A DNA stretch of 64,000 nt from Macrostomum lignano (lineage: Eukaryota): contig NIVC01003175.1 of the NCBI GenBank assembly GCA_002269645.1, positions 50,151 to 114,150 of the forward strand. Reading direction: 5' to 3'. Position 1 is the first letter of the stretch. The number at the start of each line of letters is the position of its first letter. Positions 10,487 through 40,860 of the stretch are shown here, piece by piece. Under the pieces are notes generated by a model. That model saw only the letters and a list, made by a program, of their open reading frames with translations, had not been told where the DNA came from and searched no databases. The position numbers were made by a program, and so were the translations under genes.

Positions 10487-10689
10487 GCGGACAGCAATGC
10501 GGTGTTTTTGATGCTAATACTACTCACAGTAGCGCTGGGATAGTGGAGTTTCAAATTAGACTAAACTAAGCTTTGGAATTAACTATACCTTTAGCATTTT
10601 GGTCTGGGAATACTCGTAAAAATCAAACTTACACCAAACCCCAGACAGACTAATTGGGGAGGGAGTTGCTAAGATATTAAGGCTCCTGG

Positions 10690-12175
10690 GAATTTTCTGA
10701 GATGTCAAGCCTCGGGGGAATTGCTGAAATGTCAAGGCTTACGGGGGAATTGGTTGAGAAGTCAAGGCTTACGGGGGAATTGGTTGAGAAGTCAAGGCTT
10801 ACGGGGGAATTGGTTGAGATGTCAAGGCTTACGGGGGAATTGGTTGAGATGTCAAGGCTTACGGGGGAATTGGTTGAGATGTCAAGGCTTACGGGGGGAA
10901 TGACTGAGAAGTCAAGGCTTACGGGGGAATTGGTTGAGATGTCAAGGCTTACGGGAGAATTGGTTGAGATGTCAAGGCTTACGGGGGAGTTGGTTGAGAT
11001 GTCAAGGCTTACGGGGGAGTTGGTTGAGATGTCAAGGCTTACGGGGGGAATGGTTGAGATTTCAAGGCTTAGGGGGGGAATGACTGAGATGTCAAGGCTT
11101 ACGGGGAGGAATGACTGAGATGTCAAGGCTTAGGGGGGGGGAATGACTGAGATGTCAAGGCTTAGGGGGGGGGAATGACTGAGATGTCAAGGCTTAAGGG
11201 GGAATTGGTTGAGATGTCAAGGCTTAAGGGGGAATTGGTTGAGATGTCAAGGCTTAGGGGGGGGATGACTGAGATGTCAAGGCTTAAGGGGGAATTGGTT
11301 GAGATGTCAAGGCTTAAGGGGGAATTGGTTGAGATGTCAAGGCTTAGGGGGGGGGGAATGACTGAGATGTCAAGGCTTAGGGGGGGAATGACTGAGATGT
11401 CAAGGCTTAGGGGGGGAATGACTGAGATGTCAAGGCTTAGGGGGGGGGAATGACTGAGATGTCAAGGCTTAGGGGGGGGGAAATGACTGAGATGTCAAGG
11501 CTTAAGGGGGAATTGGTTGAGATGTCAAGGCTTAAGGGGGAATTGGTTGAGATGTCAAGGCTTAGGGGGGGGATGACTGAGATGTCAAGGCTTAAGGGGG
11601 AATTGGTTGAGATGTCAAGGCTTAAGGGGGAATTGGTTGAGATGTCAAGGCTTAAGGGGGAATTGGTTGAGATGTCAAGGCTTAGGGGGGGGGGAATGAC
11701 TGAGATGTCAAGGCTTAGGGGGGAATGACTGAGATGTCAAGGCTTAGGGGGGGAATGACTGAGATGTCAAGGCTTAGGGGGGGGAATGACTGAGATGTCA
11801 AGGCTTAGGGGGGGGAATGACTGAGATGTCAAGGCTTAGGGGGGGAATGACTGAGATGTCAAGGCTTAGGGGGGAATGACTGAGATGTCAAGGCTTGGGG
11901 GGGAATGACTGAGATGTCAAGGCTTAGGGGGGGGGGGAAATGACTGAGATGTTAAGGCTTAGGGGGTTGGGGGAATGACTGAGATGTCAAGGCTTAAGGG
12001 GGAATTGGTTGAGATGTCAAGGCTTACGGGAGGAATGACTGAGATGTCAAGGCTTAGGGGAGGAATGACTGAGATGTCAAGGCTTAAGGGGGAATTGGTT
12101 GAGATGTCAAGGCTTACGGGAGGAATGACTGAGATGTCAAGGCTTAGGGGAGGGGGGATGATTGAGATGTCATGG
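10690..12175. repeat. About 30-bp minisatellite (GAGATGTCAAGGCTTA...GGGGGAATTGGTT)n with variable G-runs
   Basis: 30-bp period visible at 10741-11040. Related degenerate units at 40100-40730. Confidence 0.95.
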
Positions 12176-13097
12176 CTGCGAGGTCAGAAGCATCATATAT
12201 AGTTAATTAAAAAATCATTCCAACATTTGTTGCCTCTCCAACAGGGGGGGGGGGGCTGATTGCTAGTCCTACAACTAAAACAGAGCCCTAGTAAAAATTC
12301 AAAGTGGAAAAATGAAACAGAGAACACAGAATTTCTCTGGGATGAGAAAACCGTGAGGTTATTGCAGAATGCGATTTCTTACCATTTTTATTACGGAGAA
12401 CACAAAAATGAATCATTAATTATTAGTTCGCAGACGACATGGCACGGTCGCTTGAAAACTTGTGACAGATTTTCTTGTATCAAATTCGAGACCAGGATAA
12501 AAAAAGACAGGGACCACAGGTTTGATCTGGGTTGCAAAAAATTCCAGTAAGAGTAAGTTTTTTTGTTCAATCTTTTTCCGACAGGTTTGAGCTTTGAGAT
12601 TTTGCGTGACAATTTGATGGGGGGGTCAGTCTGTTTGTGAAGCGAGGAAACTAGGTCGCAGTTATTATCATAGTCTGGATTAGAAACTACACACATCTGG
12701 CAGCGCACTGGTACAGGGTACGGAAGCGGATCTTATTGTGGAAGACGAAACAACTAATGCAAACATGTGGCGGTACCTCGGTGAGCAGTTTTGTTTTTTT
12801 GAGTCATTTTTTTTTCATAACAAAAGTAGGCTTAAGATGGAAAACGAAGAATGAAAGCAAATGTTGAGAAAAAGTTGAATTAAATTCAGACGGAAAGACT
12901 TGTGAAAACTTCAAATAAAAGCATTGCTAAAAGAGAACTCATCAAAGATAAAATGAAAGAATAGAAAACTTAAATATAGAAAAGCCTGGGCTGTAAATGC
13001 AGAAACAGCACAAAAAACTGTTTTACTGAAAGCGCTTGATAAATTCAAAATAAAATAAACACAGCCGCTCTCCGAGAGAAAGTCAATCGTATCGAGC

Positions 13098-16000
13098 TCA
13101 GGCCTGGCTCGAATTACTCAAGATGTCGGAGAGGCTGCGCTGATTGCGCAACGACTGGGCGGTGACGCGAAAAGCTCGCTGAATCTGGGCGAACACTTCG
13201 TCGCTGTGGACGGATCTGGCAGCGTTGGTCAGGGAGAACGGCTCCTCCACGTAGATCTTGTAGCTGTTGGCGGTGAGCAGCTGTTCGTGAGCTGGAATCA
13301 GCTTCAGTGCCAGCTGGATTGGCAGCGGCTTGCCCAGCCTCACGCTCACGCTGAAGCCGCGCCAGTCGAATTCCGAATAGTACTGCACGAATCCGGAAAA
13401 CAGTTGGCCCAAATTCTGGCAGTTCTGTGACCTCAACTCCTCCCATGGCAACTGCACTCGCATGTCAATCTCTGTGTACGGCCTGTTGTAGTCGAACACC
13501 TGAGGATACAAGGACTGCAGACTGTACAGCACAGGGGGACTGCAGCCAGCCTGCAGGTACTGCACTGTCATCAGTGCCAGACTGTAGCTTGACAGCCGGC
13601 CCTGACTGGCGTCCTGCACCCCCAGCGACTGCGCCCACAGCTTCACGAACATCACAAGGGGCCGGACGCGCCAGTCGCATTTGGCGTATGCGGCCATGAG
13701 GTGCGTGTTGTAAATACCGATGGGATTGTTGATGTTCAGGTCGCAGTCTAGACCGGTCTTTGTGTCGTGAAACTTCAAAATAGAGACCTGAGGATTTTTG
13801 TTTTTTTGGGATGTAGACTGCAGTTGCAAGCTCTTGATCTTAATAGTTTTATTAAGGCATTAGACTGTGACAGGTTAAAGATAAGCACCGAACCTCATTA
13901 ACCTATGACCAGTTGCTAAACTTGTTGTTAACCCATTAACCAGGTGCTGAACATAGAACTGAATGTAATTAGCAGGTGCTGAGCATATAACTGAACCTAA
14001 TTAGCAGGTGCTGAGCATAGAACTGAATGTAATTAGCAGGTGCTGAGCATAGAACTGAATGTAATTAGCAGGTGCTGAGCATAGAACTGAATGTAATTAG
14101 CAGGTGCTGAGCATAGAACTGAATGTAATTAGCAGGTGCTGAGCATAGAACTAAACCTAATTAGCAGGTGCTGACAATAGAACTAAACCTAATTAGCAGG
14201 TGCTGACCATATAGCAAAACCCAATGACCAGATGCTGAACATAGAACTAAACTTGATAAAAAAGGGTCTCCATATCAGACAGCGATTTAATTGACGCACC
14301 TTAGCTCGAATCAGCTCAATATTAGTGATGAAGCGGCACTGGCACAGTGGCCGTTTCAAATGATTCAACACTTGGTCCCGCTTCTGGTCCAGCTCGCGGT
14401 CATTGATGGTCAGGCACAGGTCCAAGTCGGCCCAATCGGTGCCAAATCCATTCATAGACGAGCCCACAATAAACAGGCCGGCCGAGTGAAACGAAGCGGA
14501 CACAACTGACAGCAGGGCGTCTCTGAGCATCAGCTTCCTCTCGTAGGTGGCGTCGGTTTGGCGTTTCTCAACAAATAGCTGCCAGATTCGGCCAGAGTTC
14601 CATTCGGCATAGGCCGCCATCGAATCCGCTGGCGAGGATGATAGGGTAGCTGGCGGCGGCAGCTGGGGCGCCTGGGGAGGCAACTGCGGTGGGTCAAATA
14701 GAGTCGACGGTGGGTTAATGAACTCAATTTTGGATCAAAGTGTCGGTGGCGGGTCAAAGTGTCGGTGGTGGATCAAAGTGTCGGTGGCGGGTCAAAGCAT
14801 CGGTGGTGGGTCAAAGTATCGGCGGCGGGTCAAAGAGAGTCGGTGGCAGGTCAAAGTGTCGGTGGCGGGTCAAAGTGTCGGTGGTGGATCAAAGTGTCGG
14901 TGGCGGGTCAAAGAGAGTCAGCGGTGGGTCAAAGTATCAGCGGCGGGTCAAAGAGAGTCGGTGGCAGGTCAAAGTGTCGGTGGCGGGTCAAAGTGTCGGT
15001 GGCGGGTCAAAGTGTCGGTGGTGGATCAAAGTGTCGGTGGTGGATCAAAGTGTCGGTGGCGGGTCAAAGAGAGTCAGCGGTGGGTCAAAGTATCAGCGGC
15101 GGGTCAAAGAGAGTCGGTGGCAGGTCAAAGTGTCGGTGGCGGGTCAAAGTGTCGGTGGCGGGTCAAAGTGTCGGTGGTGGATCAAAGTGTCGGTGGCGGG
15201 TCAAAGAGAGTCAGCGGTGGGTCAAAGTATCAGCGGCGGGTCAAAGAGAGTCGGTGGCAGGTCAAAGTGTCGGTGGCGGGTCAAAGTGTCGGTGGTGGAT
15301 CAAAGTGTCGGTGGCGGGTCAAAGTGTCGGTGGTGGATCAAAGTGTCGGTGGCGGGTCAAAGTGTCGGTGGTGGATCAAAGTATCGGTGGCGGGTCAAAG
15401 AGAGTCAGCGGTGGGTCAAAGTATCGGTGGCGGGTCAAAGAGAGTCAGTGGCAGGTCAAAGTGTCGGTGGTGGATCAAAGTGCTGGTGGTGGATCAAAGG
15501 ATCAAAGTGTCGGTGGCGGGTCAAAGCATCGGTGGTGGGTCAAAGTATCGGCGGCGGGTCAAAGAGAGTCGGTGGCAGGTCAAAGTGTCGGTGGCGGGTC
15601 AAAGTGTCGGTGGTGGATCAAAGTGTCGGTGGCGGGTCAAAGAGAGTCAGCGGTGGGTCAAAGTATCAGCGGCGGGTCAAAGAGAGTCGGTGGCAGGTCA
15701 AAGTGTCGGTGGCGGGTCAAAGTGTCGGTGGCGGGTCAAAGTGTCGGTGGTGGATCAAAGTGTCGGTGGTGGATCAAAGTGTCGGTGGCGGGTCAAAGAG
15801 AGTCAGCGGTGGGTCAAAGTATCAGCGGCGGGTCAAAGAGAGTCGGTGGCAGGTCAAAGTGTCGGTGGCGGGTCAAAGTGTCGGTGGTGGATCAAAGTGT
15901 CGGTGGTGGATCAAAGTGTCGGTGGCGGGTCAAAGAGAGTCAGCGGTGGGTCAAAGTATCAGCGGCGGGTCAAAGAGAGTCGGTGGCAGGTCAAAGTGTC

Positions 16001-20351: not shown

Positions 20352-23300
20352 TCACACTGGATTATTCAAGATGTCGGAGAGGCTGCGCTGATTGCGCAAC
20401 GACTGGGCGGTGACGCGAAACGCTCGCTGAATCTGGGCGAACACTTCGTCGCTGTGGACGGATCTGGCAGCGTTGGTCAGGGAGAACGGCTCCTCCACGT
20501 AGATCTTGTAGCTGTTGGCGGTGAGCAGCTGCTCATGAGCTGGAATCAGCTTTAGTGCCAGCTGGATTGGCAGCGGCTTGCCCAGCCTCACGCTCACGCT
20601 GAAGCCGCGCCAGTCGAATTCCGAATAGTACTGCACGAATCCGGCAAACAGTTGGCCCAAATTCTGGCAGTTCTGCGACCTCAACTCCTCCCATGGCAAC
20701 TGCACTCGCATGTCAATCTCTGTGTACGGCCTGTTGTAGTCGAACACCTGAGGATACAAGGACTGCAGACTGTACAGCACAGGGGGACTGCAGCCAGCCT
20801 GCAGGTACTGCACTGTCATCAGTGCCAGACTGTAGCTTGACAGCCGGCCCTGACTGGCGTCCTGCACCCCCAGCGACTGCGCCCACAGCTTCACGAACAT
20901 CACAAGGGGCCGGACGCGCCAGTCGCATTTGGCGTATGCGGCCATGAGGTGCGTGTTGTAAATACCGATGGGATTGTTGATGTTCAGGTCGCAGTCTAGT
21001 TGACTGACAGTGTCGCGAAACTTAATAATTGGCACCTGAAGTCAGGGAAAGTGCGTTAACAGAATGCTGATTAGTATCATAATTACTATGAGTAGTATTG
21101 AAAACAGCAAGATATCCACGTATTTTATAATCTAGGTTTCAGTTCTTTCTTTTTTTTCTTTTTTTTAATCTAGGTTTCGAAGCTTTCAGTTCTTTTGTTG
21201 ATTCTGTATTGTATTGACACTGTGTGTGAAAATTTACTACTGGAAGTATTAGCGTATCGAAATTATAAGCATTTCAGTTTACGTGGACTTTTTACATAGT
21301 CTATGTAAATTACGTGGCTGAGGTCCACTTAACCCGAAGACATATAAAAATAGACATACAAAGCGTATGTTTAACAGACACTTTGTAAGTCAAATAAAGT
21401 TTTATTAATTTTTTTTGTGATATAGTGCTTTGGAAATAGAACGTGGGAAAAGTATTTTTATGCTATAGAACCAATATAGATCAATGGAACTGCAGAATTT
21501 ATGTATAGTTTAGAAATATGTGTTGCTGTTAGCCATGCTGGCGTCAAATAGGGGATTAGCATTAATTGTTGCTACTGGACGGGATGCCTCCATTCGTAGC
21601 TTATTTCTGATTATTCCTGATTTGAATGGTGTCCTTCAAAAACTTCAATTATCTATTCAAATAAGAGAACGGAAACTAAGCTTGTGGATAAGTCACTCCG
21701 TATCCTGTCTACGAGATACGTATATTGATGTATACATGCTATATATATATATGAGTATATATCTATATAGAGCAACATGACTGAGGGTTTGTGTTAAAAC
21801 CTAACTCTCCACTCCATCGAACCGACCCCTAACACTTCCCCAAATGATTTTACTGGTTCTTAAGGTTCAATAAAGTTAGGTTCCAGCTAAACCACATACA
21901 CTCATGGCGAGCAAATCGAAACTAAAGAGTGGAAGATGTACGGGCTAAGGCCAGGCCCTTACCTTATGTGCAGTCCCCCATTCACCCACACCATCCCGAG
22001 CGAATCCTATTGGTCCAGGAGAAAGATAAGGCAGAATTAATTCGGGGTCCAGATAAACCATCTTATAAATAGAGCCAGAAAAACAATACAATTTTCCCAA
22101 TGCTTCCTTGGCATCGGCTTCGTGTTGATACTTCTTATTATATCCAATATACGCTTGGATTACAAAAGCTGCTACATAGACTGAGTATATCCTATTGTTG
22201 TACGTAGGTACATCATTGTACAGCGTATGCTCCAAACTACGCAATGCCGAACAGCAATTTAAAAATTCACGCCAATACGGCTAAAGCGTACTATGTGGAG
22301 CGCATTGTGAAGTGCACCGCAAAGAAGGTCTTTGTAAAGTGGAAGAGATATTCAAGGTAAGTTTCGAGACGCATCACTATTCTGCTATTGCAAGTGTATT
22401 TCATAAGTCAGTTTTAAGTAAAAAATCACAGCTAGTATTTAATATTCTAGCATGAGCAATACTTGGGAACCGAAAAGAGACATACCCCCGGCAGTACTGC
22501 AATCTAAGCACTCGACTTGTGGTGAGTTCTGTTTCACATTTAAAGGATCTATAAGCTAAAGATATTTATAAAATCGCTCACAAAACCTACCCTTATTAAC
22601 TTTACAGAAAAATGCTTTAAAAAATGCTGCAAAGGAAAAAACGAGAAAAAGGTAGGAAAATGCGAATTTCTAGCAGCTAAGCCCTCTCTACACTGTCAGG
22701 AATATGTTAGCAGACAAGTCTAACTGGGTTTAGAAAAGTGTTGGGTGGGTCCGAACCCACAGACAGACAGACAGACAGACATGTAAACCCTGTCTACACT
22801 ATCAGGAGTTTATGTTGGCTGATAAATGAAACTGGGTTTAGAAAAGTGTTGGGTGGGTCCAGCTAAACCCTGTATACACTGTCAGGAGTGTATGTTGGCT
22901 GATAAATGAAACTGGGTTTAGAAAAGTGTTGGGTGGGTCCAGCTAAACCCTGTATACACTGTCAGGAGTGTATGTTGGCTGATAAATGAAAATGGGTTCA
23001 GAAAAGTGTTGGGGTGGGTCCAGCTAAACCCTCTCTACAGTAAAGAGTCTATGTTGACTGATAAGTCCAACTGGGTATTGGGGTGAGTCCAGCAAAACCC
23101 TCTCTACACTGTCAAGGAGTGTATGTTGTCTAATGAGTCTAAATGGGTAGAGAAAGTGTTAGGGTGGGTCCACCTAAACCCTTCCGAAGCTGCCAGCAAT
23201 GTATGTACGCGTTCACGTTCTGACTGACAACCCTGACAAACTGTACTTTCTCCATAGATGACAAGCGACGTCACGGTCCCGATGGTAGCAGCGGCCTCTT

Positions 23301-26300
23301 CGGATCTCCAAGACGATGCTGAGGCTGAGCCGAAGACTGCCATTTCGATCAGTAAAAAACGTGAGCAAGGCCGAAGCGCTCAAAGCCATTAATCTACGAA
23401 CTAGTGAAGAGAAATTTATGAAGAAAGCGTCCGGTATGCTTGCCTCCAAACATCTTTCTGACAAACGGCGACCGACTAAGATCGGCGCTGATAGCCAGAG
23501 ACCGACTAAGAGCGGCTCTGATAGCCAGAGACCGACTAAGATCGGCTCTGATAGTTAGAGACCGACTAAGAGCGGCTCTGATAGCCAGAAACCGACTAAG
23601 ATCGGCTCTGATAGCCAGAGACCGACTAAGAGCGGCTCTGATAGCCAGAGACCGACTAGGAGCGGCGCTGATAGTTAGAGACCGACTAAGAGCGGCTCTG
23701 ATAGCCAGAGACCGACTAAGAGCGGCTCTGATAGCCAGAGACCGACTAGGAGCGGCGCTGATAGCCAGAGACCGACTAAGATCGGCTCTGATAGTTAGAG
23801 ACCGACTAAGAGCGGCTCTGATAGCCAGAGACCGACTAAGATCGGCTCTGATAGCCAGAGACCGACTAAGATCGGCTCTGATAGCCAGAGACCGACTAAG
23901 AGCGGCGTTGATGACCAAAGACCGACTTAGAAATTCGTTGCTAATTGTGGAAATGCCGCATCATATTCCCGTCGAAGTCCGCCCATTTCTGCTAGATGTG
24001 CGCCATCTCGTCCTTGTTGCAGTAGTTGAACGCAGAAGGTTGATTTGGATGCGACGGACGAAGATGATAGTGATACCGAGGCATTTTTTAATTGCAGAAT
24101 TTCAGAAAAATGTATGGACGGATACTTCACGGCTGAATGTAGCGTAGCTGACGTCTCAGAGGCTGAGAGTATTATTGATTTATTTAGTGATATCGAGCTT
24201 CATCCATTGTCTTACTTCGATAGTGATTTGCATCCTTCGCTAAAAGATTTTGTTTATGCTTGCAGTAATGAAGAGTATCCGGCTGCTATGAAGCCAGTAG
24301 TTCGCTCTTTCGAGAAGAAGCGCCATAACTGCTTTTTTCTGCAACCAGTTGTTGTCGAAAATCCGTCGGCATACTACTCATGTTCATGGCTCTGAACTAG
24401 ATGTACAGCGAGCTCTTTCACATGTAGCAAATTCTGAAGGTAACCCTCTGGTAAATAAACCAGATAACACCACAAGATAACATTCGCTCAAACAAGATAA
24501 CATGCTCTATTCCGGTTATGCAAAATGTTTATCTTGTATGAATCCTGTTTGCGAGACGAAATCTTACGTTTCCTTGCTTCAAACAAGATTCAAATAGGAT
24601 TCACTGATCAGGTAACAGTCAGGTAATTCATGCGAATCCTGCAGGGAAACATCATGTTATCCTGTTTGTTATCTTGTTTGTTATCCTAGGTCTGACAAAC
24701 AAGATTCACTGACCAGGTAACAGTCGGGTAATTCATGCGAATCCTGCAGGGAAACATCGTGTTATCCTGTTTGTTATCTTGTTTGTTTTCCTGTCTGACA
24801 AACAAGATTCACTGACCAGGTAACAGTCGCGTAATTCATGCTCTTAAGACTCGTTGTGTTTTCTATATAGATAAACTAAACGTCTTTTTAGCTGCTATAG
24901 TTCTCTTAAATTCCGATGTATATATGATTATGCTTTTGTATTAAATTACGCATATTTTCTCGAAAGTAAATGCTCGTAAATTTCAACTTTAAGGGGTTAA
25001 AATATTCACTGGAAATACGAGTACAAGAAGTGACTATCTTCCTCCTTTCCTAATCCTGTCAATCCATACACCTCCTTATTACAGGTTACAACATGGCAAT
25101 GGACAGACTGCGTCTTCTTGGTGACTTTGCTCACAACATTGCCGTACTCAAGAAGGAGAAGGATGGAGGAATCATTGTCTGCCGGGAAAGAACCGATGGT
25201 CGCAGACCTGAAGACTCGAATGACTACATTCCGAGCATACACTGCTTCGGATTTTTTGACGGACGAGAGATCAGCCGACACTGGAGCCGCTGCCGATACA
25301 AACCAGTGTCTGAAGCTACGTGTCGGTCAGATCCAGCCTCACAAGGTCGCTGCTTACTACTTTCTTTTTGTCTTCCATCGCAATATCCTAAAGACTATCA
25401 AGATTTATTAACCAAGATGAAAAAATGGTTCGAAAGCTACACAGCAGGAAAGACAGACTGATAAATAGTAACAACCAAAATGAGGGAGCTTGCTCGTTTA
25501 TTAATTGCTCACAGAAAACGTGTGAGTCAGCCGTCAATTAATCTGGAGAATATTTTAACTGCTGCAAACTTCGATGATCTTGTTGTCGCGACAAAGCAAG
25601 TAGCAGGTTTTTTTAGAAAGCAGACAGATGCAACTTCATATAGCTTGACGTTCCATCCATAGCTTTGAAAATAGGCTTTCATTTAAAAACTGCTGCAGAA
25701 ATTTCGTTAGTCTCCGCTTTAAAGGCTGATCTTCCCACTAAAGTCGAGGAAAGACGTAACTTTATAACTATCTGTCTTTGAAAGCATTTGGAAGCGAAAG
25801 GTATCCACCATTGCACTTTTAACACTGAAGGAGAGAAAGTCGGACAAATATGACACTTTGCCTCTGACGGAAGATATCAAGACTATTACATACTTTCTCA
25901 AGCACTCGTTAAGTGAGCAGAGAATTCAAGATTTGGCTGAGCCTGCATTACGGAAAAAGGCAGCTGAACTTATTGCAGTTCGACTCATGAGTTTTAATAG
26001 AAGACGAGCTTCTGAAACTTTTCGATTGATTTTACATAACTGGGAAGCCGCAAAAAAGGTCAAACAAAATGAAAATGACGACACGACACAAACTGTTCTC
26101 GGTGATCTTGAGTTTCAAATAAAAGACCGAATGTTACTTCCACGGGTTCGTGGAAAGCGAGCGGAAAATCCTGTGCCTCTACTCGTGCCTACAGAAGTCG
26201 GTCTGCTAATTGATGGTCTTATCAGCGCTCGTCCTTGTCCCGAAAAAAACGAATACGTCTTTAGTCAGCTGAATGGCCTGCGGTACATGTCTCCTTTTGA

Positions 26301-27568
26301 AGCCATTCAAAACGTTGTCTCATTCTGCCAAGAGCTAAGGCATCCTGAGCGACTAACTTCGACAAAGTTACGAAAGTATGTTGCAACTGCGTCCCAAGTG
26401 CTGGAGCTGAATGAGAATGAATTAGGCTGGCTTTCGAGGCACCTGGACCATAGCATCAAGGTGCATCACACTTTTTATCGTATACATGAAGATCGATCGA
26501 GGTGGGCAAACTCATGTTGGCGATCGAGGCAGGAAAGCTGGGGCAACTGAAAGGCAAAATGCTGGAAGAAATAGAGATTAACGACATTGATGCCGACTTA
26601 AAAGAATGGGAGGACAATCGGAAGGAAATCGAGAAGACGCACAAAGCACTAGAGAATTCTTGAGGAGGAAGACAACGGTCCTACACCTAGGAAAGTTGTT
26701 ACTCACTGGATTTCGACGAGAACGAGACTGGTCAGATCAAAAGGACCTTGTTGAGAAAGACTGTAAGCGTCAACGGCGCAAGCAGCAGCGATCAGAATCC
26801 CAAGTCGAAAAGAACGAAAATCCAGTGCAACAATCCGATGAGCTTGCATTAAAGGCTTAAGCGCACCTCTATCACTTAAAGCCTACTGATTCTGAAAGTG
26901 AGGACTTTCTTTATAAGCCTCCTGCTGAAATAAAAAGAAGTGGCAACTCTGTGAAGAAAGTGAAGCAGTTGCATGTTAACTGGTTAGCAGAAGAGGAGGC
27001 AGCATTCAGACGCGCTTTTCCCAGGATGCTCGAAGAATCAGGAGGCAAGGTGCCAGGTCTGCAAGCCTTGCAGCAACTTAAGCAAGCGGGATGAGCCGGC
27101 TCTGAAAGACTGGCCAGTTCTGAAGCTGAAGAGCAAATTCTTCAATGAAGTACAGAAGCTCCGAAAGCAGTGATTGGTTCAAATGGCTCATAAAACTGTT
27201 AAATCTTGACAAATTCTCTGTACTCCAATTTTTGTCAATTTTTTAAAATACGATTAGTGTTGGCTATAGCTTCAAGTTATTTCCGAATTCAGCTAGAAAA
27301 CCTCTTTAGTAGTGTCAAGTAAAACGAATGTATCTTAACATTTATGCGTTCTTATACATTTTTCTGTGCCAGATTGGGTGATTTTTTACTTAAAATATCG
27401 ATTGACTAGCTGAAAACCTCAAACCTGTAAATGAGCCAAATGAGTATAGCTGTTCAGCTTTGTAATGTAGAGGCCTTGAGATTAACTAGCTTCACTTCGG
27501 CGAACATCTTTCATTTTCAACTATAAATAATTCCATGTATAATTAATGCTGCTTATTTGCTTAACTTC

Positions 27569-27640
<72 letters not shown>

Positions 27641-28624
27641 GTCTGTCTGTCTGCCTGTTCGCTATGGACTCCCAAACCGCTCAGCCAAATGACTCCAAAT
27701 TTTCCTCCCACCCTAAACTCACTACAATTTTTTAGGCTAATTAAAAGTTACAAAACTCAAGCAGGATACCTAAAAGTACAAAGAACTGCCAAAAAGGTGC
27801 AATTTTTTACTAGATCTTCGAAAGCGTTGCTGCAATTTTACAAATCCGATTCAAATTCGACACACAAACAGTCAAACTGTTTTGACACAATCCTGTAAAA
27901 TTTCGAGTTTGTGCACTTTAAACGATGTGCTTACCTTAGCGTGAATCAGCTGGACACTGTTGAGAAATCTGCACTGCCTTAGCGGCTTAAGCATCATTGT
28001 GAGCACAGCCGCAGCCTCCCGTTTCTGATGCAGCTCCTGACTGGTAAGCATCAAGCAGAGATCCAGATCCGTGCTATTCGTGCCGAATCCGTTCAGCGAC
28101 GAACCGACAATGAAAATGCCAGCCGACTGAAATGTCGGCGACACAATCGACTGCAGAGTGTCTCTCAGCAGCAGCTTCTTGGCGTAGGTGGCGTCGGTCT
28201 GACGTTTCTCAACGAACAGCTGCCAGATTCGATTGGAGTTAAAATCTGCGTATGCCGCAGCCGCAGTCTCCGCCTGCGTTGGATTTGAAGCTGCTCGGTT
28301 GCCATGGAAACTACTGCTGCTGGTGGGGTTGGCACTGGAGCCGAGCTGTTGCAGAAAGCTTCGCTTGTCCTGGTCAGAATTTGGCAATGAAATTCTGCCA
28401 CCTCGGTTGCCATGGTAACGAGAAACAAAGCCTCCGTTGCCATGATATCCACTGACACCGCCTCTGTTGCCATAGTAACGATTACCGCCACCTTTGTTAC
28501 CATGGTAACGACTGACGCCAGCTACGTTGCCATGGTAGTTACTGACGCCGTCTCTGTTGCCCTGGTTGCTATGGTAACTAGCAGAGTTGCGACCAGGCCC
28601 AGCACTCTGATGATTGCCGCGCAT
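20352..28624 (-). CDS. TENT2: GLD-2/TENT2-like non-canonical poly(A) polymerase, copy B (2 coding exons, 6.9-kb intron)
   Basis: Exon 28624-27935 (GCTAAG|GTAAGC) carries GSSLNGFGTNSTDLDLCL. Exon 21035-20352 (ttcag|GTG CCA ATT) follows. The join reads LIHAKVPIIKFRD, matching the TENT2 LIRAKVPIVKFRD motif. N-terminal YHGN repeats. Confidence 0.88.
22244..22521 (+). CDS. Spliced chromodomain-encoding exons, probably the 5' part of the Crypton-like element
   Basis: Exon 22244-22356 MPNSNLKIHANTAKAYYVERIVKCTAKKVFVKWKRYS(AG|GTAAGT). Exon 22451-22521 (ttctag|C)MSNTWEPKRDIP...TC(G|GTGAGT). The join reads YYVERIV...FVKWKRYSSMSNTWEP, the chromodomain consensus. Confidence 0.75.
22680..23180. repeat. 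80-bp tandem repeat, about 6 copies
   Basis: GATAAATGAA recurs at 22821, 22901 and 22981. It lies in the intron after the chromodomain exons. Confidence 0.9.
23465..23905. repeat. 30-bp tandem repeat (ATAGCCAGAGACCGACTAAGAGCGGCTCTG)n, 10-aa unit SQRPTKSGSD in the element frame
   Basis: Directly visible. Some units carry TAG in the + reading frame. Confidence 0.95.
24590..24840. repeat. About 102-bp tandem repeat (2.5 copies) with ACAAGATAAC / GTTATCTTGT motifs
   Basis: GATTCACTGA(C/T)CAGGTAACAGTC...GTAATTCATGC recurs three times about 100 bp apart. Confidence 0.8.
25858..26550 (+). pseudogene. Tyrosine recombinase catalytic domain fragment
   Basis: Longest intact frame of the element: FNRRRASE, RGKR, TSTKLRK, DHSIKVHHTFY. 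Frame shifts near 26490. Confidence 0.7.
27575..27655. repeat. (CTGT)n microsatellite
   Basis: Directly visible. Confidence 0.95.
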
Positions 28625-40099: not shown

Positions 40100-40860
40100 A
40101 ATTGCTAAGGTGCCAAGGCTTATAGGGGGAATTGCTAAGAGGTCAAGGCTTATGGGGCATGGCTGAGATGTCAAGGCTTATGGTGGGAATTCTAAAATGT
40201 CAAGGCTTATGGTGGGAATTGCTAAAATGTCAAAGCTTATGGTGGGAATTGCTAAAATGTCAATGCTTATGGGGCAAAATTGCTAAGATATAAAGGCTGA
40301 GGTCAGAAGCTAAATGTAGTTTTTTTTCAAAAATTTGTATTACATTCTTTGTTGGCTTTCCAATGGGGTGGCACTAATAGAAGAATTGTCATATAAAATG
40401 TGTCAATTCAAAAAGAAAGAAGAGTAATATAAAATAGAAAAGAAGCATTATGTCAAATATAAAAATGTGTCATGTTGAACATAGAATATTCATTTGGGAA
40501 TTGCTACAATGTCAAGGCTTGGAATAAATTGCTATAATGCTATGAGTTATGACTCTTAGAGAGAATTACTGAAATATCAAGGTTTATTGAGGAAGAATTG
40601 CTGAGATGTCAGGGATTTAGGGTTAGATTAGGGTATTGCTAAGATTTCTAGGCTGGCAGGTGATTTTTTGAGATTTCAAGGCTTATGAAGGGCATTGCTA
40701 AGATGTCAAGGCTCATAAGGGATTGTTGAGATGTCAATTTTAATAAGAAAAATTGCTGACATTATTGCAAGGAAAAGCTATGTATAGTTTTTTCAAAAAA
40801 ATTGTACTCTATTCATTGTTGGTTCCATAATATAAAGGTGCTAATTGCTAATAAAGGTTA
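40100..40860. repeat. Degenerate relatives of the 10690-12260 repeat unit and its flank
   Basis: GCTAAAATGTCAAGGCTTATGG...GAATT units followed by GGTCAGAAGC, as at 12181. Confidence 0.6.

Follow-up and report, generated by a model that had tools for sequence, protein, structure and literature searches.

Cryptons (Goodwin et al. 2003; Kojima & Jurka 2011, PMC3212892; active CryptonF-1_cRei, PMC9977147) have a tyrosine recombinase (YR), no reverse transcriptase (RT), and no long terminal repeats. Their movement is modeled as recombination between the end of the element and a target of almost identical sequence (PMC3212892, PMC9977147). The CryptonV families, which are described from cnidarians in the accounts that we consulted, insert specifically into microsatellites (Kapitonov & Jurka 2012, cited in PMC8869645). 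The combination of a transposon YR, a zinc-finger region, and a chromodomain is found in Kirc, the captain of the Starship Enterprise from Podospora (PMC8092012). Here we analyze a stretch of 64,000 nucleotides from the flatworm Macrostomum lignano (assembly GCA_002269645.1, contig NIVC01003175.1, positions 50,151 to 114,150 of the forward strand), which is referred to below as the window. It holds a dead copy of an element that we consider likely to be a Crypton-type, CryptonV-like transposon that targets microsatellites and possesses an N-terminal chromodomain maintained by selection.

The element in the window resembles the Cryptons in its YR, in the absence of an RT and of long terminal repeats, and in what would be a short sequence common to the element end and the target; the circle-integration model fits. 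In the 9-kb unit of a relative found elsewhere in the same genome (locus L001) the YR is the sole enzyme, with no RT, RNase H, or methyltransferase beside it, and the three copies at loci L001–L003 have different flanks and common boundaries, as is expected of Cryptons. The likeness to CryptonV lies in the YR as the sole enzyme and in microsatellite insertion, with (GTCT)n at six of the six junctions of L001–L003. CryptonV was compared here by description; the descriptions consulted do not mention a chromodomain, and the present family has introns, two zinc fingers, and a C-terminal domain. CryptonA and CryptonI, in contrast, are reported without a C-terminal domain, and the CryptonA YR is of the DUF3504 type, whereas neither the window nor nine homologues gave a match to DUF3504 (PF12012). 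The present element is further distinguished from the Cryptons by the sequence TKLR in place of HxxR, by terminal inverted arms of 13 bp, by the use of a whole microsatellite as the "short repeat", and by the chromodomain.

Kirc differs from the present element in being fungal, with a DUF3435-type YR, a C-terminal chromodomain, and a giant, cargo-carrying element around it. The M. lignano element, from an animal, is free of cargo, and an intron divides its N-terminal chromodomain. No match to DUF3435 was found, and the size of 6–9 kb without cargo is not that of a Starship. Neither the window intron nor L001 yielded an RT, which separates the element from DIRS, Ngaro, and PAT. The chromoviruses (Ty3/gypsy) also attach a chromodomain to an integration enzyme, where it directs insertion to heterochromatin, but they are retrotransposons with a DDE integrase, and their chromodomain is C-terminal within an intronless pol open reading frame (ORF). 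Gao and colleagues are said to have reported in 2008 that chromodomains direct chromovirus integration; their paper is among those that PMC12506042 cites. Many chromoviruses lack one or more of the aromatic residues of the chromodomain cage. An earlier note on this stretch, written from the sequence without database searches, knew of no well-described chromodomain-bearing Crypton. The literature that was searched yielded no description of a Crypton-type element of animals whose N-terminal, HP1-like chromodomain is split by an intron, nor of SET-bearing relatives. The claim of novelty is tempered, since a chromodomain-bearing YR transposase as such was already known in Kirc (PMC8092012), Cryptons specific to microsatellites are known in CryptonV, and the copy in the window is a pseudogene.

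Chromodomain and Gene Structure

The first two exons of the element gene (Table 1), when spliced, encode the 61-residue peptide MPNSNLKIHANTAKAYYVERIVKCTAKKVFVKWKRYSSMSNTWEPKRDIPPAVLQSKHSTC. This peptide matches the Pfam Chromo profile (PF00385) with a score of 31.0 bits and an E-value of 2.5e-7, relative to a cut-off of 25.1 bits. The solved chromodomains to which it was matched are those of HP1, CBX5/3/1, Clr4, and CDYL. In the alignment with HP1, residues Y16, W33, and Y36 of the window peptide correspond to the cage residues Y24, W45, and Y48. The HP1/CBX proteins provide the best solved-structure matches and share with the window peptide the Y-W-Y cage and the NTWEP motif; the present domain differs in a β1–β2 hairpin that is four residues shorter, in the lack of a chromoshadow domain, and in its attachment to a recombinase. 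The window chromodomain is HP1-like with a complete aromatic cage.

The closest relative in the databases is the intact M. lignano protein PAA76011.1 (P0033), which has 1184 residues, is called "Chromo domain-containing protein" in UniProt, and is approximately 65% identical over the recombinase part. It scores 29.2 bits against Pfam Chromo, which is also over the cut-off, and the cage residues in the M. lignano relative copy are F, W, and Y. The window copy is collinear with PAA76011.1 in every segment, from the chromodomain through the C-terminal domain. The order in PAA76011.1 is the chromodomain, EKCFPPNEQQKTMT, and MGSDVTIP…, and exon 4 of the window copy opens with MTSDVTVP….

The earlier note had proposed two GT-AG exons that encode a chromodomain with an intact cage, and this is borne out by the Pfam score and the HP1 alignment. 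It had also reported that the join of these exons to the acceptor at 23257 was out of frame. This is resolved by a 44-nt exon at 22608–22651, which had been missed and restores the frame. Exons 1–3 total 228 nt, and exon 4 is entered in frame at position 23258, directly after the acceptor AG that ends at 23257. Introns 1–4 occur at identical codon positions in the window copy and in L001. The phases of exons 1–3 are conserved, and their lengths of 113, 71, and 44 nt in the window differ by multiples of 3 from those of 101, 71, and 41 nt in L001. The gene consists of five exons. Exons 1 and 2 encode the chromodomain and are followed by the Cys-rich micro-exon; next come a linker that is acidic and rich in repeats, a pair of zinc fingers, a core-binding-like domain, the YR, and a three-helix domain at the C-terminus.

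The linker contains fifteen 30-bp units at 23470–23931 that would encode RPTKSGSDSQ. PAA76011.1 has a repeated unit of 130 residues where the window copy has these 30-bp coding repeats. Judged from the two sequences, the linker of the transposase may tolerate or attract repeat expansion.

Related Copies and Selection

At least three copies of the relative are found in M. lignano, on contigs NIVC01000850, NIVC01001010, and NIVC01001364 (loci L001–L003). They are 98–99% identical over the shared unit, and their flanks were found to be unrelated by sensitive blastn. These copies look recently mobile. No second ORF and no RT were found in the 9-kb L001 unit, in which Chromo is the sole Pfam match; the assignment to Crypton-type YR elements in the earlier note is supported to the extent that this is a mobile element with a YR only. 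The lineage of the window element itself has been seen once only.

The proportion of synonymous differences (pS) between the window copy and L001 is 0.70–0.78, which is saturated. The proportion of nonsynonymous differences (pN) is 0.26 in the chromodomain (pS 0.70); the YR catalytic domain has a pN of 0.20 and the C-terminal domain one of 0.15. At nonsynonymous sites the chromodomain has diverged about as far as the catalytic domain, and it has therefore been under a constraint similar to that on the enzyme. From these proportions, the chromodomain has been kept under purifying selection.

It might be argued that the chromodomain exons are a separate gene or element and that a chimeric gene model gave rise to the 1184-residue M. 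lignano protein. Chimeric models do exist in this YR family (P0178, below), and the first ORF track did not find the chromodomain join. However, the chromodomain exons are present in L001, L002, and L003, each time approximately 1.1 kb inside the left boundary, with unrelated sequence flanking the unit; the earlier note had held that recombinase copies without the chromodomain would count against a fusion, and none of the three lacks it. The divergent window copy has the same arrangement and the same intron phases, in each of the two lineages exon 4 continues the frame of exons 1–3, and the pN of 0.26 against a pS of 0.70 indicates coding constraint. Because the chromodomain exons lie within the mobile unit in four copies, with conserved intron phases and with this ratio of pN to pS, the separate-gene and chimeric-model readings fall, and we regard them as extremely unlikely. 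The comparison of four copies in two lineages supports the assignment of the chromodomain to the element's own gene. When the chromodomain N-terminus was used to search the protein database, the sole sequence returned was a short M. lignano model that belongs to this element.

Recombinase and Decay of the Window Copy

The uninterrupted ORF at 25858–26547 was modeled with AlphaFold2 at a pLDDT of 89.9. When this model was compared with the Protein Data Bank (PDB) using Foldseek, the top 14 matches were XerH, XerA, and Cre, with a probability of 1.0 for the top 10, TMq values of 0.42–0.58, and a best E-value of 4e-4. The full-length model of PAA76011.1 matched XerA and the integron integrase IntI across the core-binding-like and catalytic domains; in the part equivalent to 25085–25857 the pLDDT is 73–98 per 10-residue block, mostly >85. 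In family alignments of 20 and 56 members no or almost no variation is seen at the residues R, K, R, H, and Y, and the five family boxes are N-R-R-R-x-G-E, R-G-K-R, S-T-K-L-R-K, G-H, and H-x-x-(F/Y)-Y-R. The equivalence of these residues to the catalytic residues of Cre and Xer was judged by order and spacing. We accept from the predicted fold that 25858–26550 encodes a tyrosine recombinase.

The + strand pieces that the earlier note had described as a frameshifted Cys/His region, a recombinase with the order R-K-R-H-Y, and a C-terminal helical region were all located. The recombinase boxes that it listed are present, with the correction that "DH" is a degenerate form of the "GH" that is near-invariant in the family. 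Three confident helices are predicted for the C-terminal domain in the full-length AlphaFold model of PAA76011.1, and our guess is that this domain binds DNA.

The window copy is a pseudogene, in which the chromodomain exons happen to be intact. Exon 4 has a stop codon near 23390, a block of 30-bp repeats that is broken by stops and changes of frame, and a +1 frameshift near 24337, in a run of T in finger 1. Finger 2 has lost one zinc-ligand Cys. In exon 5 there is a 57-nt deletion near 25425, and an in-frame TGA TAA is found at 25459–25464, where PAA76011.1 has Arg-Gln. Further frameshifts occur near 25640, 25775, 26490, and 27085, which brings their number to at least five, and a change of G to D adjoins His-III of the recombinase.

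Element Ends and Target

The L001–L003 copies are flanked on both sides by (GTCT)n in the same orientation at all six junctions, and (GTCT)n arrays of at least five units are nearly absent elsewhere in the 109 kb examined. Directly inside (GTCT)n are inverted arms, the left one reading TAGTGTATGTGTG… and the right one …CACACATACACTA, which are perfect over 13 bp and 88% complementary over 24 nt. The (GTCT)n microsatellite is the only target feature that is visible in the sequence. Kojima and Jurka described YR sites as inverted repeats of 11–13 bp around a short spacer (PMC3212892). The ends and arms of L001–L003 fit this layout, the Crypton model, and the microsatellite insertion ascribed to CryptonV. 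For two distant members of the family on metagenome contigs (L004 and L007), (AGGGG)n and (TCCCT)n were found near one and nothing of this kind near the other.

A 13-nt motif, GGTCCASCTAAAC, has 12 matches in the window relative to 2.3 expected, 9 of which are within the element, and 23 matches in L001 relative to 0.9 expected, all within the element. In both elements the sites occur in the 5′ region and in tandem arrays of 80–85 bp in intron 3. We can only guess that these motif arrays are candidate binding sites for the zinc fingers or the C-terminal domain.

The region of intron 3 and exon 4 is a hot spot for tandem repeats in the window (22674–23206), in L001 (10548–13600), and in L002 and L003. 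The 80–85-bp units carry GGTCCAGCTAAAC and an arm-like AGTGTATG box. The arrays have grown to higher-order repeats of 1.3 kb, and the gene of one copy reaches 36 kb, with the chromodomain exons duplicated. The unexpanded element is approximately 6–9 kb, and expansion of the tandem arrays brings one M. lignano copy to approximately 38 kb.

The multi-exon gene, its long introns, and the purifying selection on its domains would also be expected if these loci were a domesticated host gene family, encoding a chromatin protein with a chromodomain, zinc fingers, and a YR in the manner of the Crypton-derived ZMYM and KIAA1958, with the window copy as a dead paralogue. Crypton YRs have been domesticated repeatedly (PMC3212892). 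Such a gene family does not account for L001–L003, which are 98–99% identical although their loci are unrelated, and which share sharp boundaries, terminal inverted arms, and microsatellites at their flanks. The insertions are intronic and intergenic. Every catalytic residue is retained, the window copy has decayed freely, and the family comprises approximately 16,700 clusters at 50% identity, as is expected of a mobile element. We consider domestication to be very unlikely.

Proposed Mechanism and Role of the Chromodomain

For the microsatellite-targeting transposon that we favor, we infer the following mechanism. The recombinase would bind the 13-bp inverted arms that are directly inside the flanking (GTCT)n tracts, and the excision circle would read arm-(GTCT)n-arm, in a layout like that of the lox, FRT, or dif core site. 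By crossover of the tract in this presumed circle with a (GTCT)n array of the genome, the element would be integrated with (GTCT)n left on both sides. The chromodomain, whose cage would bind methyl-lysine, most likely would tether the recombinase to nucleosomes that carry this mark, and such tethering would bias the choice of microsatellite or the locations at which the element persists. That integration or persistence is biased toward marked chromatin is a possibility that we put forward tentatively.

The transposon may also be as described and its chromodomain have no role in targeting, with (GTCT)n and the arms fully specifying integration. The chromodomain could then serve in self-association, in binding RNA or a partner that is methylated but not a histone, or in recruiting or escaping host silencing after insertion. 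Sequence-specific boundaries do explain every junction seen, the insertions are genic, and most family members function without a chromodomain. Set against these points are a cage that is intact in both lineages (Y/F, W, and Y), best solved matches that are methyl-lysine readers, the direction of integration that is reportedly exerted by chromovirus chromodomains, and sister lineages with a histone methyltransferase domain at the same position. A chromodomain without a targeting role is, in our judgment, rather unlikely.

Several observations weigh against the description of this element as a microsatellite-targeting, chromatin-guided YR transposon. With the window pieces and nine intact homologues, Pfam Phage_integrase and DUF3504 gave no YR match at E ≤ 1, and the family alignment, run as a profile against PDB sequences, found no YR, only a chance zinc-finger match at an E-value of 0.43. 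The YR assignment rests on the predicted fold and the motifs. Of the two profiles that the earlier note had proposed, Chromo was found and Phage_integrase was not; the YR fold of 25858–26550 was matched in structure. For the zinc-finger and C-terminal regions, Pfam searches of the window pieces and the intact homologues returned nothing. The His of the HxxR box is replaced by Thr (TKLR), three residues ahead of Arg-II. The full-length AlphaFold model leaves residues 1–420 unfolded, including the chromodomain, because the alignment has no depth there, and this result is uninformative rather than negative. A spliced mRNA that joins the chromodomain to the YR would follow from the deposited gene model and from comparative constraint. 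Family scans found no member outside Macrostomum with a chromodomain of its own.

The window copy is bounded by (GTCT)n at its 3′ side only (1/2 junctions), and a search of the window for the terminal arms of L001–L003 found none, nor a left (GTCT)n array. As sequence, the (GTCT)n junctions would fit both an element that targets (GTCT)n and one that carries (GTCT)n ends. All four insertions (the window copy and L001–L003) are in or beside genes, and none is in obvious heterochromatin. These genic insertions weigh against simple heterochromatin targeting, and the sequence target by itself would explain the junctions.

The Wider Recombinase Family

An exhaustive profile search identified 16,736 clusters (50% identity) at E ≤ 1e-3 and 4,767 at E ≤ 1e-30, with named members from fish, echinoderms, molluscs, beetles, and flatworms. 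The N-termini of 79 long members were scanned, and a SET domain was found in 18, a BRCT domain in 3, and a chromodomain in 1, the last being an MPP8-like chimera. DUF3504 was found in one of the 79, alongside a QRICH1 domain. The SET domain of P0025 from Apostichopus japonicus, the only member compared with structures, has KMT5A/SET8 as its nearest solved relative. KMT5A/SET8 is the H4K20 monomethylase. P0025-like SET-YR proteins are encoded on at least two sea-cucumber chromosomes, and the SET-YR member may be a transposon-borne histone methyltransferase. N-terminal chromatin modules look like a recurring theme of this YR family. The broader proposal, that the family has repeatedly placed chromatin modules before the recombinase and that its elements would be readers or writers of histone methylation where they integrate, is speculative, and we hold it to be doubtful.

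A BRCT domain is N-terminal to the YR module in P0051 (Argopecten) and in two more members, whose fusions could be real or could come from chimeric gene models. The 1277-residue protein P0178 was considered as a second fusion of a chromodomain with a YR and was rejected, since an N-terminus with an MPP8-like chromodomain and ankyrin repeats is joined in it to an inserted YR copy. It is most likely a YR insertion in a host intron that was read through by the annotator. P0178 shows that gene models of this kind require checks at the level of the locus.

Host Gene and Features of the Window

The element resides in a 6.9-kb intron of a gene for a GLD-2/TENT-type poly(A) polymerase. The ORFs at 20352–21035 and 27872–28624 are the two halves of a single palm domain, and therefore the element is antisense within the intron, as the earlier note had stated. 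The element spans from 21.1/21.3 to 27.66 kb, and its gene occupies 22244–27173 of the + strand. The left end falls somewhere within 21036–21268. The conserved 5′ block that begins at the latter position contains two GGTCCASCTAAAC-like copies of the motif, at 21277 and 21322, and intron 4 contains a tandem repeat at 24591–24841 (105 bp × 2.4). The coordinates of the features are collected in Table 1.

Table 1. Coordinates of the element, its gene, and the host gene within the window
Feature	Position in window	Strand	Description
Host-gene half-ORFs	20352–21035 and 27872–28624	−	Cid1/GLD-2-type palm domain, split at profile position 104/105
Conserved 5′ non-coding block	21268–21372 (105 bp)	+	76% identity to L001 9081–9186; equal distance upstream of ATG
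Exon 1	22244–22356 (113 nt)	+	Start codon and N-terminal half of chromodomain; donor GTAAGT; counterpart L001 10001–10101 (101 nt)
Cage residues, exon 1	Y16, 22289–22291; W33, 22340–22342; Y36, 22349–22351	+	
Exon 2	22451–22521 (71 nt)	+	C-terminal half of chromodomain, SMSNTWEPKRDIPPAVLQSKHSTC; acceptor TCTAG, donor GTGAGT; counterpart L001 10213–10283 (71 nt)
Exon 3, micro-exon	22608–22651 (44 nt)	+	EKCFKKCCKGKNEKK; acceptor CTTTACAG (ACAG), donor GTAGGA; counterpart L001 10406–10446 (41 nt, EKCFPPNEQQKTMT, matches PAA76011.1)
Intron 3 tandem units	22674–23206 (TRF 22784–23182)	+	About five 80-bp units, each with GGTCCAGCTAAAC and a AGTGTATGTTG-like box
Exon 4	23258–24439	+	Linker, 30-bp repeats, acidic stretch, finger 1 (C2H2-like, KKRHNCFF-CNQLLSKIRRHTTHVH); collinear with PAA76011.1 residues 72–465
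Intron 4	24440–25084	+	Donor GT 24440, acceptor AG 25083–25084; codon …G/YN… as in L001 14130–14424
Exon 5, first part	25085–25857	+	Finger 2 (CCHC type, from 25093; first Cys now Ser) and core-binding-like helical domain
YR catalytic domain	25858–26550	+	R50, 26005–26007; K100, 26155–26157; R172, 26371–26373; H198, 26449–26451; Y207, 26476–26478
C-terminal three-helix domain and stop	26957–27173	+	VNWLAEEEAAFRRAFPRMLEESGGKVPGL… / EPALKDWPVLKLKSKFFNEVQKLRKQ; 55–82% identity to PAA76011.1 residues 1088–1184
(GTCT)22 microsatellite	27569–27658	+	3′ boundary of element; TRF

A 99-residue ORF on the minus strand (21945–22244), which abuts the ATG, lacks conservation in L001 and was rejected as a chance ORF. 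As an empty site, the paralogous gene for a poly(A) polymerase at 13113–14623 was tried and rejected, since the introns (approximately 515 bp in the paralogue) do not align and the homology ends within 4–10 bp of the exon.

The two GLD-2/TENT-type genes, at 13113–14623 and 20352–28624, are tandem paralogues on the minus strand. Their C-terminal exons are 96.8% identical in DNA sequence and their N-terminal exons 75%; the homologous introns are approximately 515 bp and 6.9 kb, with homology that ends within 4–10 bp of the splice site. This pattern suggests gene conversion or partial duplication. A second long periodic array is found between the paralogues, at approximately 14.7–18.1 kb. A satellite-like tandem array at 10656–12177 and 40100–40737 is approximately 76–78% identical to L001 1841–2296.

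A separate repeat of approximately 250 bp is present at 27606–27908 and at L001 24803–25116, with 76% identity between the two, and begins directly at the (GTCT)n array in both. In the window it occupies the gap from the 3′ microsatellite of the element to the host exon. This repeat may be another element associated with microsatellites, or else a retroposon whose (AGAC)n tail lies on the minus strand.

Conclusions

For retroelements such as the chromoviruses, and lentiviruses through LEDGF, it is well established that integration enzymes are tethered to chromatin. To our knowledge, such tethering has barely been explored among the tyrosine-recombinase DNA transposons. M. lignano can be made transgenic. 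With an intact reader, an intact recombinase in the sister lineage, a defined target, copies that look recent, and a host amenable to transgenesis, a bias of YR integration toward histone marks is therefore testable. As a tool, a site-specific recombinase that brings its own chromatin tether could be of interest. In annotation, a set of orphan proteins that are labeled "Chromo domain-containing" or "KMT5A-like" is explained as transposon products. If the broader proposal for the YR family is true, it would provide a case of chromatin-coupled, site-specific transposition, layered over the recognition of a microsatellite.

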